Shown piece by piece: positions 44,882-47,884 of a stretch of 64,000 nt of DNA (within the stretch, counting starts at the first letter, position 1; every line of letters starts with the position of its first letter). The position numbers and the translations under genes are program-made. The stretch covers positions 42,098,001 through 42,162,000 of the forward strand of contig NC_088855.1 of the NCBI RefSeq assembly GCF_963853765.1, given 5' to 3'. This DNA comes from Magallana gigas. Its lineage: Eukaryota. Under the pieces are notes generated by a model, which was given only the letters and a program-made list of their open reading frames with translations, had not been told where the DNA came from and did no database searches.

Positions 44882-47800
44882 TCAAGCCAACTCTTGCTTA
44901 GCAAGGGCAAGTTCATCGCTGTCAATCACCACTCGAAGCTTGATCTGGCGCACCGCCAAATCCTCCAGAATGTCGTTGGTGACCAGAATAGATTCAAACA
45001 CTCTCAGCAGACTACCGTCCTCTAGGTTGACGCAGACATCAGTCACTTGTTTAGGAGTCATACATATATTGCACACCATCAGGGAGTTTTCCATGTCCAC
45101 ACGTAGAACAAGAGTTCCACGCTCCTGTTCAAAGTACTTGATGATGGACATGTTCATCGCACTAGTTAGGGATTTGTAGAACCTCTCCACCAACTTCTTG
45201 AACGTTGGCCCTCGATGTCTCCACATAAGGCAATGCTCCACAGGTTTCTCTGTCTGTAGTGACAAATTTAAGTTTTCTCTCTTTTTCCTTTGATCATTGT
45301 TTAGATTATTCTCTGTGTGGTTGCCCAGATTTTCCTTATCATTAGTATCACACTGATCCAACCTATCACCATTACAGTTGATGGAATTCTTCCTGTTCTG
45401 CATGCTTTCTAAACTTCCAATCTTGTTGAAAACATGGCTGTCCTTTAACACATTAATGGCCTCTGTGGATAAAGTGTACGAAATGAAACTAGTTCTACTG
45501 CTTGACCTTATGATGGTTGGACCCTCATGACGCAGATTCTTCAAGAGTTCGTTCCCTTTGAGTGGTTTAACAGGAGAAGGGGACCTTGTTATCACATTCT
45601 TTACTTCGTACTTCAGCTTTCGCTTGGCCGGAGGTTTCTTTTTGGTTTTGGACCTTCGACAGAAGCACCAGCAAGAGGACATTTCCTCGTCACTTTCATC
45701 GTAAGCGTACTCCTTTATCCTCCTTCCCGCCGAGGACCACTCCTCCCCAATCATTGTCATGTTCTCATATGACTTGTGGGCCCTGCGAGGAGTGAGGACT
45801 GGAGCTGTCCCCTCTTTCTTCCTCCTCTCCTTCTCTGGGGTATCCCCCGTCTTCTCGTCCAGGTCATCCCCCTCCTCCCAGCTGGGAAACACCCCAAAGA
45901 TTCTGTCCACCTCAACATTGATGGTCACTTGTCCTACAAAAGAGTTTTTACAGGGATGAGTGAATGAACACCTTTGCTTTCTTAATTTGCTTCAAAATGA
46001 CATCAGATAATTATTACCTATAAATCAAATGTAAAAGCATTACCAGTAATATTAACCCAAAGTAATGTGCAAATCAATTAATCATAGTTTAAAAGCACAT
46101 TAATATGCAAATCTTTTCAGCGTTAATTTACCTGAGGGTTTGCTACATATTTGTTTATATAAAACTAATATGTGAACAAATGAAATTGAAATATGTTGCA
46201 ATTATAAATACAGAAGCAATGCATTTTTGTGGTACATTAGTTCAAGTGTATTGGTCTAATGACATGATGAGATTGTCAAGTTTATAGGACATGACTTTTC
46301 TCAGGCTCTGTTCCTCAGTGACAACCCAATATTAATAAACTAGTACAGATGTACTGTACATGTACAATCACAGTTTCTAAATGTTACAATTACACTGATT
46401 GAACAACTTCAGGCTTCCTTTACATGCTATAGTTATCATAGCCATTAACCTTGGACAAATCATTAAGGATTATGTCCAACTCAATCATTGTCTAACTGTC
46501 AATAATCACGATGTAAACATGGCTTACAATCCAGGATGTCACAATAACGAAAACAGACAGATTAATGAAGGGTCATCCTGACTGTAATTACTGGCTATGT
46601 CTGGCTGTTCAACTCATTAGGTATTAATTGTAAATATTTGTATGCTTCAACAAACAGGGCAAGTATGGAAACCAGTGTCAGATCATTCAAAAGGCCACTA
46701 TAAGTTCAAAATACCAACTGCCAGCACAAATCAAACAAAATCTTACTAAAAATTCAATATTTTTTTATTCTTTTGTATAATATTTCCTCTTTCCTCTAAT
46801 ACTGTGTATCTAAACACCTTTGTATTTTCTTAGGGCTATTCCACCTTAAAGCTTTCAAGCTTTTTCAAAATAATAAAATGGCTGGATATTGTGGTGGCTT
46901 TAAAAAGTTCTGTATAGACTATTACCTTTGTATCTGTCCTTGCCAAGGTACCCTGAAAAGAAACATGTGCAGAATCAATTAACATGGCAGCATTGTAGAT
47001 CCAATATTGAGTACACAGTCTGTCAGTCTCCTTTATGTGGAGATGACACGATAAATTAAAAGTAAGCAAGTCTGATGGAGGCATTTTATTACTGTTTTGT
47101 CACAATTTTTTAACAGACTATGTGTAAATGAAAACCTTTGTAAGGGAAGAGATTTCACTTTGTGAAATAAGGGCATTTCCAAGCTATCCATAATTGGTAT
47201 CATGACACACAACGTAAAAAAAAAATATGAGAAACACATTGATTTAGTGATGTGTCTTATTCATATATTTGATTGATGCTTTATTCTAATATCATATTTC
47301 TAATTGTGAGGAAATTTCCTAATACATCGTATACAGTGAAATAATTTACTGGTAAATCAATAAAGGCCAACTTTTGTGGATTTCTAAATTTTTACAGATA
47401 GGTTTGAAGAGAAAGCAATTTTGTGGATTCCCAAATATTGAATAAAAATAATTTTTCTAGGTGATGGTTACCTATAAAATCTGCACAACCTGAGCCACCA
47501 AAATAAAAAATCATTTCATGGTACTGATTAACCATAAAGTTCTATTTCTAAACTTCAGTTAAAAAGAAAGGCAAAATCAAACTGAAGGCAACAGTTACCT
47601 GAGCCATAGATGGGTTTGATCCTAGAATTCTCATCTAGGGAGCTAGCGAGGGAAAGCTGGCCGGACTGTCGCAGGGCGTTGATAAACAGTGCCACCGCGG
47701 AGCTTCCCGTTCCCTCCACCAGCTGTAACAGGGCCGTGTTCCGCTGCGCCTTGTTCTTGCCGTTCTCGATCTTTTCCTTCTCCACTTGGTGCAGGACTCC

Positions 47801-47884
47801 ATGTTGGATCAGGTAGTCGTAGATGGCCTCTGCATCCAGGGATTCGATCAGCTCCTCTCGCTCCGACAGAGAAATTCTCTGCAT
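44882..47884 (-). CDS. CARD-domain protein with a disordered middle and a probable TRADD-N-like C-terminal domain (454 aa)
   Basis: Exons 47884-47599, 46952-46926 (27-nt microexon) and 45933-44882 are in phase. The N-terminus REELIESLDAEAIYDYLIQHGVL...RNTALLQLV...FINALRQSGQLSLASSL is CARD-like. The C-terminus SLMVCNIC...LEDGSLLRVFESILVTNDILEDLAVRQIKLRVVIDSDEL resembles the TRADD-N-like pattern (from memory). Confidence 0.85.

Follow-up and report, generated by a model that had tools for sequence, protein, structure and literature searches.

Sessile marine invertebrates carry greatly expanded sets of TRADD-N domains, yet a mechanism is known for vertebrate TRADD only. The survey by Kaur, Iyer, Burroughs & Aravind (2021, eLife 10:e70394; PMC8195603) describes the TRADD-N fold as a two-layer alpha+beta sandwich of RRM-like type whose antiparallel sheet has four strands. 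It also describes the classic TRADD clade as confined to vertebrates and DEDD2 as nucleolar, and its Fig. 4 source data 1 catalogues a protein from Lingula (XP_023931977.1) as CARD+TRADDN-DEDD2. Among oyster proteins, CgMAVS combines a CARD with a Death domain and a C-terminal transmembrane helix (Huang et al. 2017, Sci Rep 7:8217).

The oyster gene analysed here belongs with the catalogued Lingula protein. A profile of the oyster family finds that protein (P0055) at E = 1.1e-16, and all four elements discussed below (CARD, strand motif, Cys cluster, C-terminal domain) are present in it. Because this orthologue was catalogued by Kaur et al., the CARD+TRADDN-DEDD2 architecture is already known, but it is uncharacterised. 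Section 11 and supplementary file 18 part 6 of that paper, together with word searches, gave the architecture string only, and we found no mention in these searched parts of the Cys/polybasic motif, of a discontinuous fold or of an oyster orthologue. We put the probability at about 0.6 that the oyster locus encodes a 454-aa cytosolic death-fold adaptor that joins a CARD to a split TRADD-N domain with a lipid-anchored loop, and that would act as a membrane-proximal signalling bridge.

An expressed gene with an N-terminal CARD

The gene lies on the minus strand of the window (the whole 64,000-nt stretch of DNA that we analysed) and has three coding exons, 47884-47599, 46952-46926 and 45933-44882, which give a CDS of 1365 nt encoding 454 amino acids. 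Both introns between them (45934-46925 and 46953-47598) have GT..AG ends on the minus strand and are seen in stranded poly(A) RNA, as raw reads in two runs and as transcript contigs in two more. Apart from one residue (A173G), the spliced CDS matches the database protein P0001 (454 aa, 259 contigs). The oyster gene is real, spliced and expressed: the three exons proposed in an earlier note, made from the DNA letters alone, are joined in transcripts, and every element that it described is present at its position on the minus strand.

Coding exon 1 and the adjoining 5'UTR (47885-47948) occupy 47599..47948, as defined by the ORF, RNA depth and the splice joint 47598/47599; the ATG is at 47884, and the exon carries aa 1-95 and the first base of codon 96. 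The second coding exon is a micro-exon of 27 nt (46926..46952) that encodes GYLGKDRYK, that is, aa 96-104 with the first base of G105. Both of its flanking joints occur in raw RNA reads and in contigs, and its peptide is present in P0001 and is kept as GY(L/F/W)xKxR(H/Y)K in molluscs, Lingula and annelids. Coding exon 3 (44882..45933), defined by the ORF and RNA depth, carries aa 105-454 and the stop codon (44882-44884), and RNA depth extends the 3'UTR below 44882, at least to about 44500. Upstream of the coding region there is a non-coding 5' leader exon at 48626..48769 on the same strand, whose upper end is approximate: a transcript contig from run X6 continues for 144 nt past 47949 and matches the window from 48627, leaving a leader intron (47949-48625) that reads CT..AC on the plus strand and so GT..AG on the minus strand. 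An alternative 5' leader used in run X24 was looked for in the 64,000-nt window and not found there.

The CARD spans aa 7-83 (47636..47866, minus strand). It matches Pfam PF00619 at E = 3.8e-13, with 49.7 bits against a cut-off of 23.9, over profile positions 6-82 of 85. Its nearest natural solved sequences are the CARDs of Apaf-1 (E about 1e-5) and caspase-9 (E about 1e-4), and judged by sequence it is a CARD of the Apaf-1/caspase-9 type. The Pfam scan of the 454-aa protein found no other domain, and therefore no caspase, NACHT or helicase domain, just as the earlier note had it. The scan gave no DED match (PF01335), the N-terminal domain scoring as a CARD, and with the single sequence there was no match to PF09034 (TRADD_N) or PF00531 at E values up to 10. 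A hydrophobic segment of transmembrane grade is absent, the maximum Kyte-Doolittle mean being 1.34 over 19 residues. Because Pfam detects the CARD alone, database labels for the family are uninformative–its members are called 'uncharacterized' or 'CARD domain-containing' in current databases, and annotators should be warned of this. Gastropod orthologues are labelled 'serine-rich adhesin for platelets'.

A C-terminal domain of the TRADD-N superfamily

The body of the C-terminal domain covers aa 337-454 (44885..45238, minus strand). It is well conserved, with a mean column identity of 61% across bivalves and the family signature K-Y-F-E-Q-(D/E)-R-G-x-L-V-L ... N-I-C-M. As a single sequence, the last ~110 aa have no Pfam match to PF20694 (TRADD-like_N) or PF09034, and a direct match to PF20694 is found in just one of 53 family members (E = 4e-4). 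When the profile of these 53 sequences was compared by hhalign with PF20694 proteins, however, the two matched with 98.1% probability (E = 8.7e-14) over 109 columns. The family profile, searched against 1.8 billion proteins, also reaches PF20694-bearing proteins of corals, at E values of 2-5e-4.

We modelled aa 328-454 with AF2. A first model from 17 sequences was too poor (pLDDT 55) and was replaced by one from 53 sequences, with pLDDT 88.1, in which the order of elements is alpha-alpha-beta2-beta3-alpha2 (kinked)-beta4-alpha3. The best match in a fold search of the ESM Atlas is a cluster in which 45% of the members carry PF20694 (TM 0.69/0.71, rmsd 1.9 Å over 100 aa), and the next row scores 0.50. 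In AFDB, the clusters at TM 0.6-0.76 comprise HEPN/DZIP3, Death-domain, GIMAP and PARP proteins, one match among them being named 'TRADD-like N-terminal domain-containing protein'; the TRADD-N fusions described in PMC8195603 include HEPN, PARP and AIG-type GTPase. The best structural matches in Swiss-Prot are the C-terminal domains of human DEDD (239-308) and DEDD2 (242-311), with probabilities of 0.98 and 0.95 and an rmsd of about 3 Å.

Solved structures are less telling, and they are where an explanation of the C-terminal region as a generic ferredoxin-like or ACT-like module, resembling TRADD-N by convergence, finds its evidence. When candidates from Foldseek were re-aligned, the TRADD-N chain 1f3v_A was the top solved chain (Z 6.0, rmsd 3.2 Å, 96 aa), and Foldseek against the PDB also ranked 1f3v first, yet at a non-significant E = 1. 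With VIA-align, the full set of PDB representatives gave only generic ferredoxin-like matches, at Z 4-6.1, with an IS200 transposase at Z 6.1, so many solved proteins of this kind score level with TRADD-N. A profile of 17 bivalve sequences searched against PDB sequences gave noise only; it included an aspartokinase chain at E = 0.48, the matched part of which is presumably the ACT region. Solved structures by themselves cannot separate TRADD-N from other ferredoxin-like folds. What argues against convergence is the hhalign match to PF20694 proteins, the distance between the TRADD-like_N cluster and the next row in the ESM Atlas, and the independent classification of the Lingula orthologue as TRADD-N in the source data of Kaur et al. 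We regard a generic module as largely refuted and retain hardly any belief in it. The C-terminal domain is a member of the TRADD-N superfamily, of the DEDD2 clade, Pfam TRADD-like_N: profile-profile comparison, predicted-structure matches and the literature agree on the TRADD-N-type C-terminus that had been proposed from the DNA letters.

The family assignment also bears on function. One could read the protein as a linear chain of CARD, disordered linker and TRADD-N–a reversed analogue of TRADD whose C-terminal domain specifically binds the MATH domain of TRAFs and so links CARD signalling to them. The superfamily assignment fits this reading, as does the top place of 1f3v among the re-aligned chains, since that structure is TRADD-N in complex with TRAF2. 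The domain falls, however, in the DEDD2/TRADD-like_N clade and not in the vertebrate TRADD clade, with no match to PF09034, and the Ser turn motif that contacts TRAF2 is loosely conserved. This is the 'uS' motif, which PMC8195603 gives as a tiny residue and then a Ser, or sometimes a Cys, in the turn between beta2 and beta3. In the hhalign alignment the G-S of PF20694 proteins pairs with N60-S61 of the oyster domain. The Ser column contains G (22 sequences), T (8), A (7), S (6) or C (5) in 48 of the 53 sequences, and the column before it is mostly D, S, N or E, from which it appears that the turn position stays small and the 'uS' motif itself is only loosely kept. Short TRAF-binding motifs in the region between the CARD and the C-terminal body were sought by eye, and none is conserved across bivalves. 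We hold a reversed TRADD analogue to be somewhat unlikely, and the prediction described next tells against its linear layout.

A predicted split fold and a conserved Cys/polybasic motif

The AF2 model of the C-terminal body has no beta1: it contains only a beta2-beta3 hairpin, and the beta4 segment is confidently predicted but unpaired. The alignments to 1f3v and to the IS200-type transposases likewise begin at about chain residue 21-27, past where beta1 would be. A candidate for the missing strand is the motif G-Q-V-T-I-x-V-x-V-x-x-I at aa 105-120 (45887..45933, minus strand), which we identified as a predicted beta1 by alignment, HMM and two-chain prediction. Among the 30 family members that were aligned, it has an invariant G and alternating hydrophobic residues. 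When 98 family sequences were searched with an HMM of the motif, 56 had a match upstream of their Cys cluster (30 of these 56 trained the HMM, and most of the sequences with no match are N-terminally truncated fragments). The motif follows the CARD, or stands at the N-terminus in family members that have no CARD; in the oyster protein the CARD lies about 20 residues upstream of it in the same polypeptide.

When aa 96-135 and aa 328-454 were predicted as a complex of two chains, the pair scored 0.84, compared with 0.01 for the best control, in what is one in-silico test that docks separate pieces without alignments and is uncalibrated for short predicted segments. Of 78 solved complexes 51 reached this mark, as did 2 of 108 mismatched pairs; at least 68% of contacts are shared between the prediction runs, and the partner pLDDT is at least 58. 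In the docked model, residues 107-117 run antiparallel with residues 105-115 of the body and touch 61-69. Residues 105-120 are thus predicted to fill the beta1 slot between beta3 and beta4 and so to give a 4-1-3-2 sheet its central, fourth strand, a point that is new here. Other TRADD-like_N proteins likewise have a beta1-like strand and then a variable spacer.

These models change how the middle of the protein should be seen. The earlier note had placed a disordered linker between two domains; because the C-terminal model lacks beta1 and aa 105-120 are predicted in its place, this 'linker' is probably an insertion of ~220 aa, between beta1 and alpha1, within a discontinuous TRADD-N fold.

Inside the putative insertion there are two conserved motifs. 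The first is P-R-R-x-H-K-S-Y-x-N-M-T-x-I at aa 153-166 (45749..45790, minus strand), whose columns P153, R154, R155, H157, K158, S159, Y160, M163, T164 and I166 are nearly invariant in the bivalve alignment. The second, at aa 190-210 (45617..45679, minus strand), is evident from the translation and from family conservation and consists of S-S-C-W-C-F-C followed by an R/K-rich run–the Cys cluster beside a polybasic run that had been pointed out from the DNA letters. This is far from a chance arrangement: all 17 bivalve sequences keep C192, C194 and C196, and most family members of full length, including those of gastropods, cephalopods, a chiton, Lingula and annelids (Owenia and Lamellibrachia among them), have a cluster of the CxCxC type with hydrophobic residues after it and basic ones after those. 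The motif is conserved across molluscs, a brachiopod and annelids, which is also new here.

The Cys/polybasic motif is a plausible candidate for an S-acylation and membrane-binding site: we take its alternation of Cys with aromatic residues, and then basic ones, to resemble palmitoylated motifs such as the N-terminus of PSD-95. A nuclear localisation signal like that of DEDD would fit the basic run equally well. If so, the protein might be a DEDD-like nuclear or nucleolar regulator that scaffolds or restrains a CARD caspase in the nucleus, its Cys cluster being metal-binding or structural. That the best Swiss-Prot structural matches are to DEDD and DEDD2 speaks for such a regulator, as does the domain order, which is that of DEDD; a DEDD cluster (PF01335 + PF20694) is also among the nearest non-CARD clusters by language-model features (score 0.80, a lead only), and K/R-rich runs such as K-K-K-P-P-A-K-R-K resemble classical NLSs. 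The N-terminal domain is, however, a CARD and not a DED, and across phyla the basic run always comes directly after a CxCxC interleaved with aromatic or aliphatic residues, an arrangement that is typical of acylation sites and needless for an NLS. We judge a nuclear regulator unlikely, and prefer the membrane-bound adaptor.

The oyster gene belongs to an old family, whose members were met here in molluscs, a brachiopod and annelids. A search of the oyster's own genome with the family profile returned the oyster gene as the sole strong match, with two weak TRADD-like_N matches, and found no copy lacking a CARD. A six-frame search of the same genome with PF20694 gave two exon-level matches only and is therefore of no use for counting copies. 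Because the family spans these phyla and has one strong match in the genome, the oyster gene is an easier experimental entry point than the fast-evolving, lineage-specific TRADD-N expansions.

Proposed mechanism and comparison with known systems

In the adaptor that we favour, the predicted discontinuous fold, with beta1 ~20 residues after the CARD and the remainder of the fold (aa about 345-454) beyond the low-complexity insertion, would bring the CARD next to the TRADD-N module and leave the insertion to project as a loop. The Cys cluster may be S-acylated and, with the basic run, would pin this loop to a membrane. The CARD would recruit a CARD partner homotypically–a CARD caspase, an Apaf-1-like protein or another CARD adaptor–and the exposed sheet of the TRADD-N module would bind a second signalling protein. 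To our knowledge, the MATH domain of TRAF is the sole structurally documented ligand of TRADD-N. Working much as TRADD and DEDD/DEDD2 do, the protein might thus act as a membrane-proximal bridge in apoptotic or innate-immune signalling.

A bolder version makes the TRADD-N domain a tethered split-domain switch. With beta1 beside the CARD and the rest of the domain 220 residues away on a lipid-anchored loop, beta1 could complete the body of its own chain (in cis), which closes the monomer, or that of another chain (in trans), so that strand-swapped chains form at the membrane; recruitment to the membrane would in this way be tied to oligomerisation and to nucleation of CARD filaments, and the protein would be a lophotrochozoan-specific, MAVS-like hub. 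We think this quite improbable. If true, it would give a concrete structural shape to the 'TRADD-N conformational switch' that Kaur et al. propose. Should the predicted split fold and the lipid anchor of the adaptor be borne out, one would see from this family how a CARD comes together with a TRADD-N module at a membrane, and oyster immunology would gain an uncharacterised CARD adaptor to try against OsHV-1 and Vibrio.

Of the known systems, MAVS and CgMAVS are similar by functional analogy only, MAVS having an N-terminal CARD, a long unstructured region, a membrane anchor and TRAF recruitment. We rejected identity with the oyster MAVS because CgMAVS carries a Death domain and a transmembrane helix, whereas our protein lacks both and ends in a TRADD-N-type domain. 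TRADD (PDB 1F3V, 1F2H) shares the coupling of a TRADD-N-type alpha/beta sandwich to a death-fold adaptor domain. Its TRADD-N is followed by a death domain, whereas in the oyster protein the order is reversed, the partner domain is a CARD, there is no match to PF09034, and the Ser motif that contacts TRAF2 is weakly kept in the family.

The earlier note's layout of a CARD with TRADD-N is borne out, but its presentation as a novel 'reversed TRADD' is not: the closest known layout is that of DEDD/DEDD2, and the architecture stands in the catalogue of Kaur et al. DEDD and DEDD2/FLAME-3 have, in the same order, an N-terminal death-fold domain, a middle region that is basic and of low complexity, and a TRADD-N-type domain (PF20694) at the end, and PMC8195603 puts the Lingula orthologue in the same TRADD-N clade, DEDD2. 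The oyster protein differs from them in having a CARD instead of a DED at the N-terminus, a middle region with a conserved CxCxC-polybasic motif, and a TRADD-N domain that is predicted to be split by an insert of ~220 aa; and, unlike the vertebrate DEDD and DEDD2, its family is seen here in lophotrochozoans only.

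A spliced gene for a CARD protein

The gene lies on the minus strand, and from reading the sequence and its open reading frames its coding region consists of exon 1 (47884-47599, with an ATG start and a GT donor at its end), a 27-nt micro-exon (46952-46926) and exon 3 (45933-44882, stop included), which together form a coding sequence of 1365 nt (454 codons plus stop). The earlier note had proposed that these three exons are joined in transcripts, and both joints were found: the introns 45934-46925 and 46953-47598 are skipped exactly by raw reads of two poly(A) RNA-seq runs (2026) and by two sets of transcript contigs, and both introns have GT..AG ends on the minus strand (CT..AC as read on the plus strand). 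Every first mate maps to the plus strand, the orientation that a stranded library should give for an mRNA transcribed from the minus strand, and RNA depth is restricted to the exons of this gene. The database protein P0001 (454 aa, 259 assembled contigs) is identical to the conceptual product apart from A173G.

The 3'UTR, also on the minus strand, extends in RNA at least as far as 44500. At its upper end (47948) the 5'UTR is spliced onto a non-coding leader, of which there are two distinct versions: a contig from RNA run X6 uses an exon at ~48626-48769 (-), within the window, and reads of run X24 join another sequence at 47948/47949, which is absent from the window at up to two mismatches. A T>G polymorphism at window position 47600, adjoining the exon 1 donor, is synonymous, turning the coding-strand codon TCA into TCC, and because of it the aligner lists the same intron twice in X24 and X6, the second joint having one 'G' between its sides. 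The Pinctada imbricata homolog P0013 lacks exactly the nine residues of the micro-exon (columns 95-104 of A1, an alignment that includes bivalve sequences), so that either the micro-exon was overlooked in annotation or this is an in-frame exon-skipping isoform; in the oyster reads, no direct joint of exon 1 to exon 3 rises above the listing threshold. An (RE)n run in the list of open reading frames, at window 51964-52302 (-), is a GA/CT-type microsatellite and not a gene.

Residues 7-83 match the Pfam CARD family (E = 3.8e-13; 49.7 bits versus a cut-off of 23.9), and the closest natural sequences with solved structures are the CARDs of Apaf-1 (E ~1e-5) and caspase-9 (E ~1e-4). A Pfam scan of the whole protein matched no other family anywhere, in agreement with the claim that caspase, NACHT and helicase domains are absent, and the 454 residues contain no hydrophobic stretch of transmembrane grade. 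Identity with the published oyster MAVS was rejected, as that protein is described as CARD + DD + TM.

Assignment of the C-terminal domain

Searched alone against Pfam, the C-terminal domain gave no match, and neither did a shallow profile. An exhaustive search with a bivalve profile recovered 85 proteins. At its weak end (E = 2-5e-4) stand three cnidarian proteins bearing PF20694 ('TRADD-like_N') above its gathering score, in two of which the PF20694 region coincides with the profile-matched region. Comparison by hhalign of 53 family C-terminal domain sequences (alignment A3) with 27 PF20694 proteins (alignment A4) gave a probability of 98.1% and E = 8.7e-14 over 109 columns. An AlphaFold2 model of residues 328-454 made from A3 (pLDDT 88.1, pTM 0.76) has as its best fold match in the ESM Atlas a cnidarian cluster with PF20694 in 45% of its members (TM 0.69/0.71, rmsd 1.9 Å, 100 residues), the runner-up having a TM of 0.50. 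AFDB clusters at TM 0.6-0.76 include HEPN/DZIP3, Death-domain, GIMAP and PARP proteins, with one member named 'TRADD-like N-terminal domain-containing protein'. HEPN, PARP and AIG-type GTPases are given as TRADD-N partner domains by Kaur et al. (PMC8195603), so several of those partners are among the AFDB matches. Among Swiss-Prot models, human DEDD and DEDD2 supply the two best matches, each through its C-terminal domain (probabilities 0.98 and 0.95; rmsd ~3 Å over 70 residues).

Among solved structures, 1f3v_A (TRADD-N bound to TRAF2) ranks first by Foldseek with a non-significant E-value of 1, and first again in VIA re-alignment (Z = 6.0, rmsd 3.2 Å, 96 aa). When all PDB representatives were searched, other ferredoxin-like folds equaled TRADD-N (an IS200 transposase has Z = 6.1), so the solved structures by themselves show just a ferredoxin/RRM-like fold; it is the profile comparison and the predicted-structure libraries that carry the TRADD-N family assignment. 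This assignment is settled by the entry of Lingula XP_023931977.1 (the family homolog P0055) as 'CARD+TRADDN-DEDD2' in Fig 4 source data 1 of Kaur, Iyer, Burroughs and Aravind (eLife 2021, PMC8195603). Together, the hhalign result, the predicted-structure matches and this entry bear out the resemblance to TRADD-N that the earlier note had suggested. At the level of sequence the 'uS' turn motif, a defining TRADD-N feature, appears to be only partly kept: it aligns with N-S in the oyster protein, and the family position is small, with G-S not conserved.

Family range and a predicted split fold

Homologs with the whole architecture are present in bivalves (oysters, pearl oysters, mussels, scallops, unionids and Dreissena), gastropods (Haliotis, Patella, Nucella, Aplysia and Biomphalaria), octopus, a chiton, the brachiopod Lingula and the annelids Owenia and Lamellibrachia. 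In three heterobranch orthologs, P0037 (Aplysia, 1681 aa), P0046 (Biomphalaria, 1476 aa) and P0078 (Plakobranchus, 2001 aa), an extension of 1000-1500 aa without any Pfam domain precedes the CARD; the NCBI name of the Aplysia and Biomphalaria proteins, 'serine-rich adhesin for platelets', is misleading. In a sister subfamily (including P0029, P0032, P0039-P0042, P0047 and P0049, mostly from ENA or Logan assemblies), the C-terminal domain is accompanied by the Cys cluster, the family's strand motif and a W-(I/V)-S-L-(E/D)-D motif, without a recognizable CARD in the available sequences, some of which may be N-terminally truncated gene models.

In the oyster genome, a family-profile search gave one strong match, the CARD/TRADD-N gene, and two weak ones to other TRADD-like_N-type open reading frames. 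At L004:1447-2010 (-), equivalent to G000:C1 ~17713500-17714070, a 187-aa frame with a weak match (E = 7.5e-6) to the C-terminal domain profile resembles a compact TRADD-like_N protein, in which a beta1-like strand (G-D-L-N-I-S-V-N-C) leads through a short spacer with T-C-S-C-G into the domain body, a miniature of the family's strand-spacer-body layout. Further PF20694 or family-profile matches, at exon level only, are at L001:1351-1800 (+) (G000:C2:699331-699504), L002 (G000:C7:38953811-38953948) and L005:1363-1779; these are probably part of the oyster TRADD-N expansions reported by Kaur et al. (PMC8195603).

DSSP assigns only a beta2-beta3 hairpin to the model of residues 328-454, with no beta1, and the expected beta4 (domain residues 105-115) is confidently modeled yet unpaired. 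The strands of a beta-alpha-beta-beta-alpha-beta fold are ordered 4-1-3-2 in the sheet, which leaves beta1 as the sole possible pairing partner of beta4. In the matches examined, alignments to 1f3v and IS200-type transposases begin at about chain residue 21-27, past the expected place of beta1. A conserved strand-like motif (an invariant G, Q/E, alternating hydrophobics and an A-(L/I)-K end) occurs upstream in all complete family members, located ~20 residues C-terminal of the CARD, or at the extreme N-terminus in members without one, and always upstream of the Cys cluster; coral PF20694 proteins and the L004 frame contain a comparable strand, with a short, variable spacer after it. We docked residues 96-135, as partner, onto residues 328-454 by two-chain complex prediction without an alignment, and obtained a score of 0.84 versus 0.01 for the best control. 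Among solved complexes 51 of 78 attain this mark, and among mismatched pairs 2 of 108; short predicted segments lie outside the calibration of the test. Over three runs, in which two pieces stand for one chain, contact agreement was at least 68% and partner pLDDT at least 58. The contacts with least error set partner residues 13-22 (aa 108-117) antiparallel to body residues 105-114, and partner 12-15 against body 63-68, which would place the upstream strand between beta4 and beta3.

The TRADD-N fold is therefore predicted to be split. If the prediction holds, the TRADD-N domain is discontinuous, with residues ~121-336 inserted between its beta1 and alpha1, and the CARD abuts the TRADD-N module. 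Of the 'disordered linker' described earlier, the K-, E-, S- and N-rich region itself is present (net charge +7), but its predicted position is inside the TRADD-N fold and not between domains.

The Cys/basic motif and a possible role

Within this region the Cys cluster beside a polybasic run that the earlier note pointed out is real: a motif at residues 190-210 is strongly conserved, with C192, C194 and C196 invariant in the bivalve alignment. Its pattern, at least three Cys with W, F or L in between, a hydrophobic pair and then an R/K run, recurs across phyla, in gastropods, cephalopods, a chiton, Lingula, Owenia and Lamellibrachia. A second conserved motif, P-R-R-x-H-K-S-Y-x-N-M-T-x-I, occupies residues 153-166. 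Alternating Cys and aromatic residues beside a basic patch are a known S-acylation site pattern, for example at the N-terminus of PSD-95. We infer that the protein may be a membrane-proximal bridge, in which the CARD would pair with a CARD partner, the TRADD-N sheet would contact a further protein (possibly a TRAF) and the whole would be anchored by the putatively acylated loop. The chief competing reading is a DEDD-like nuclear role, in which the same basic run would act as a nuclear localization signal.

What is shown is that the gene is expressed and conserved, and that its product combines a CARD with a TRADD-N domain of the DEDD2 clade and a conserved Cys/basic motif. In the literature searched, including the available portion of PMC8195603, we found no mention of the predicted discontinuous fold, of the conserved peptide that the micro-exon encodes or of the Cys/polybasic motif that spans phyla, and the supplement of that paper may list oyster entries. 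The CARD + TRADD-N architecture is already cataloged there for the Lingula ortholog, so the oyster gene adds to a known, experimentally unstudied kind.
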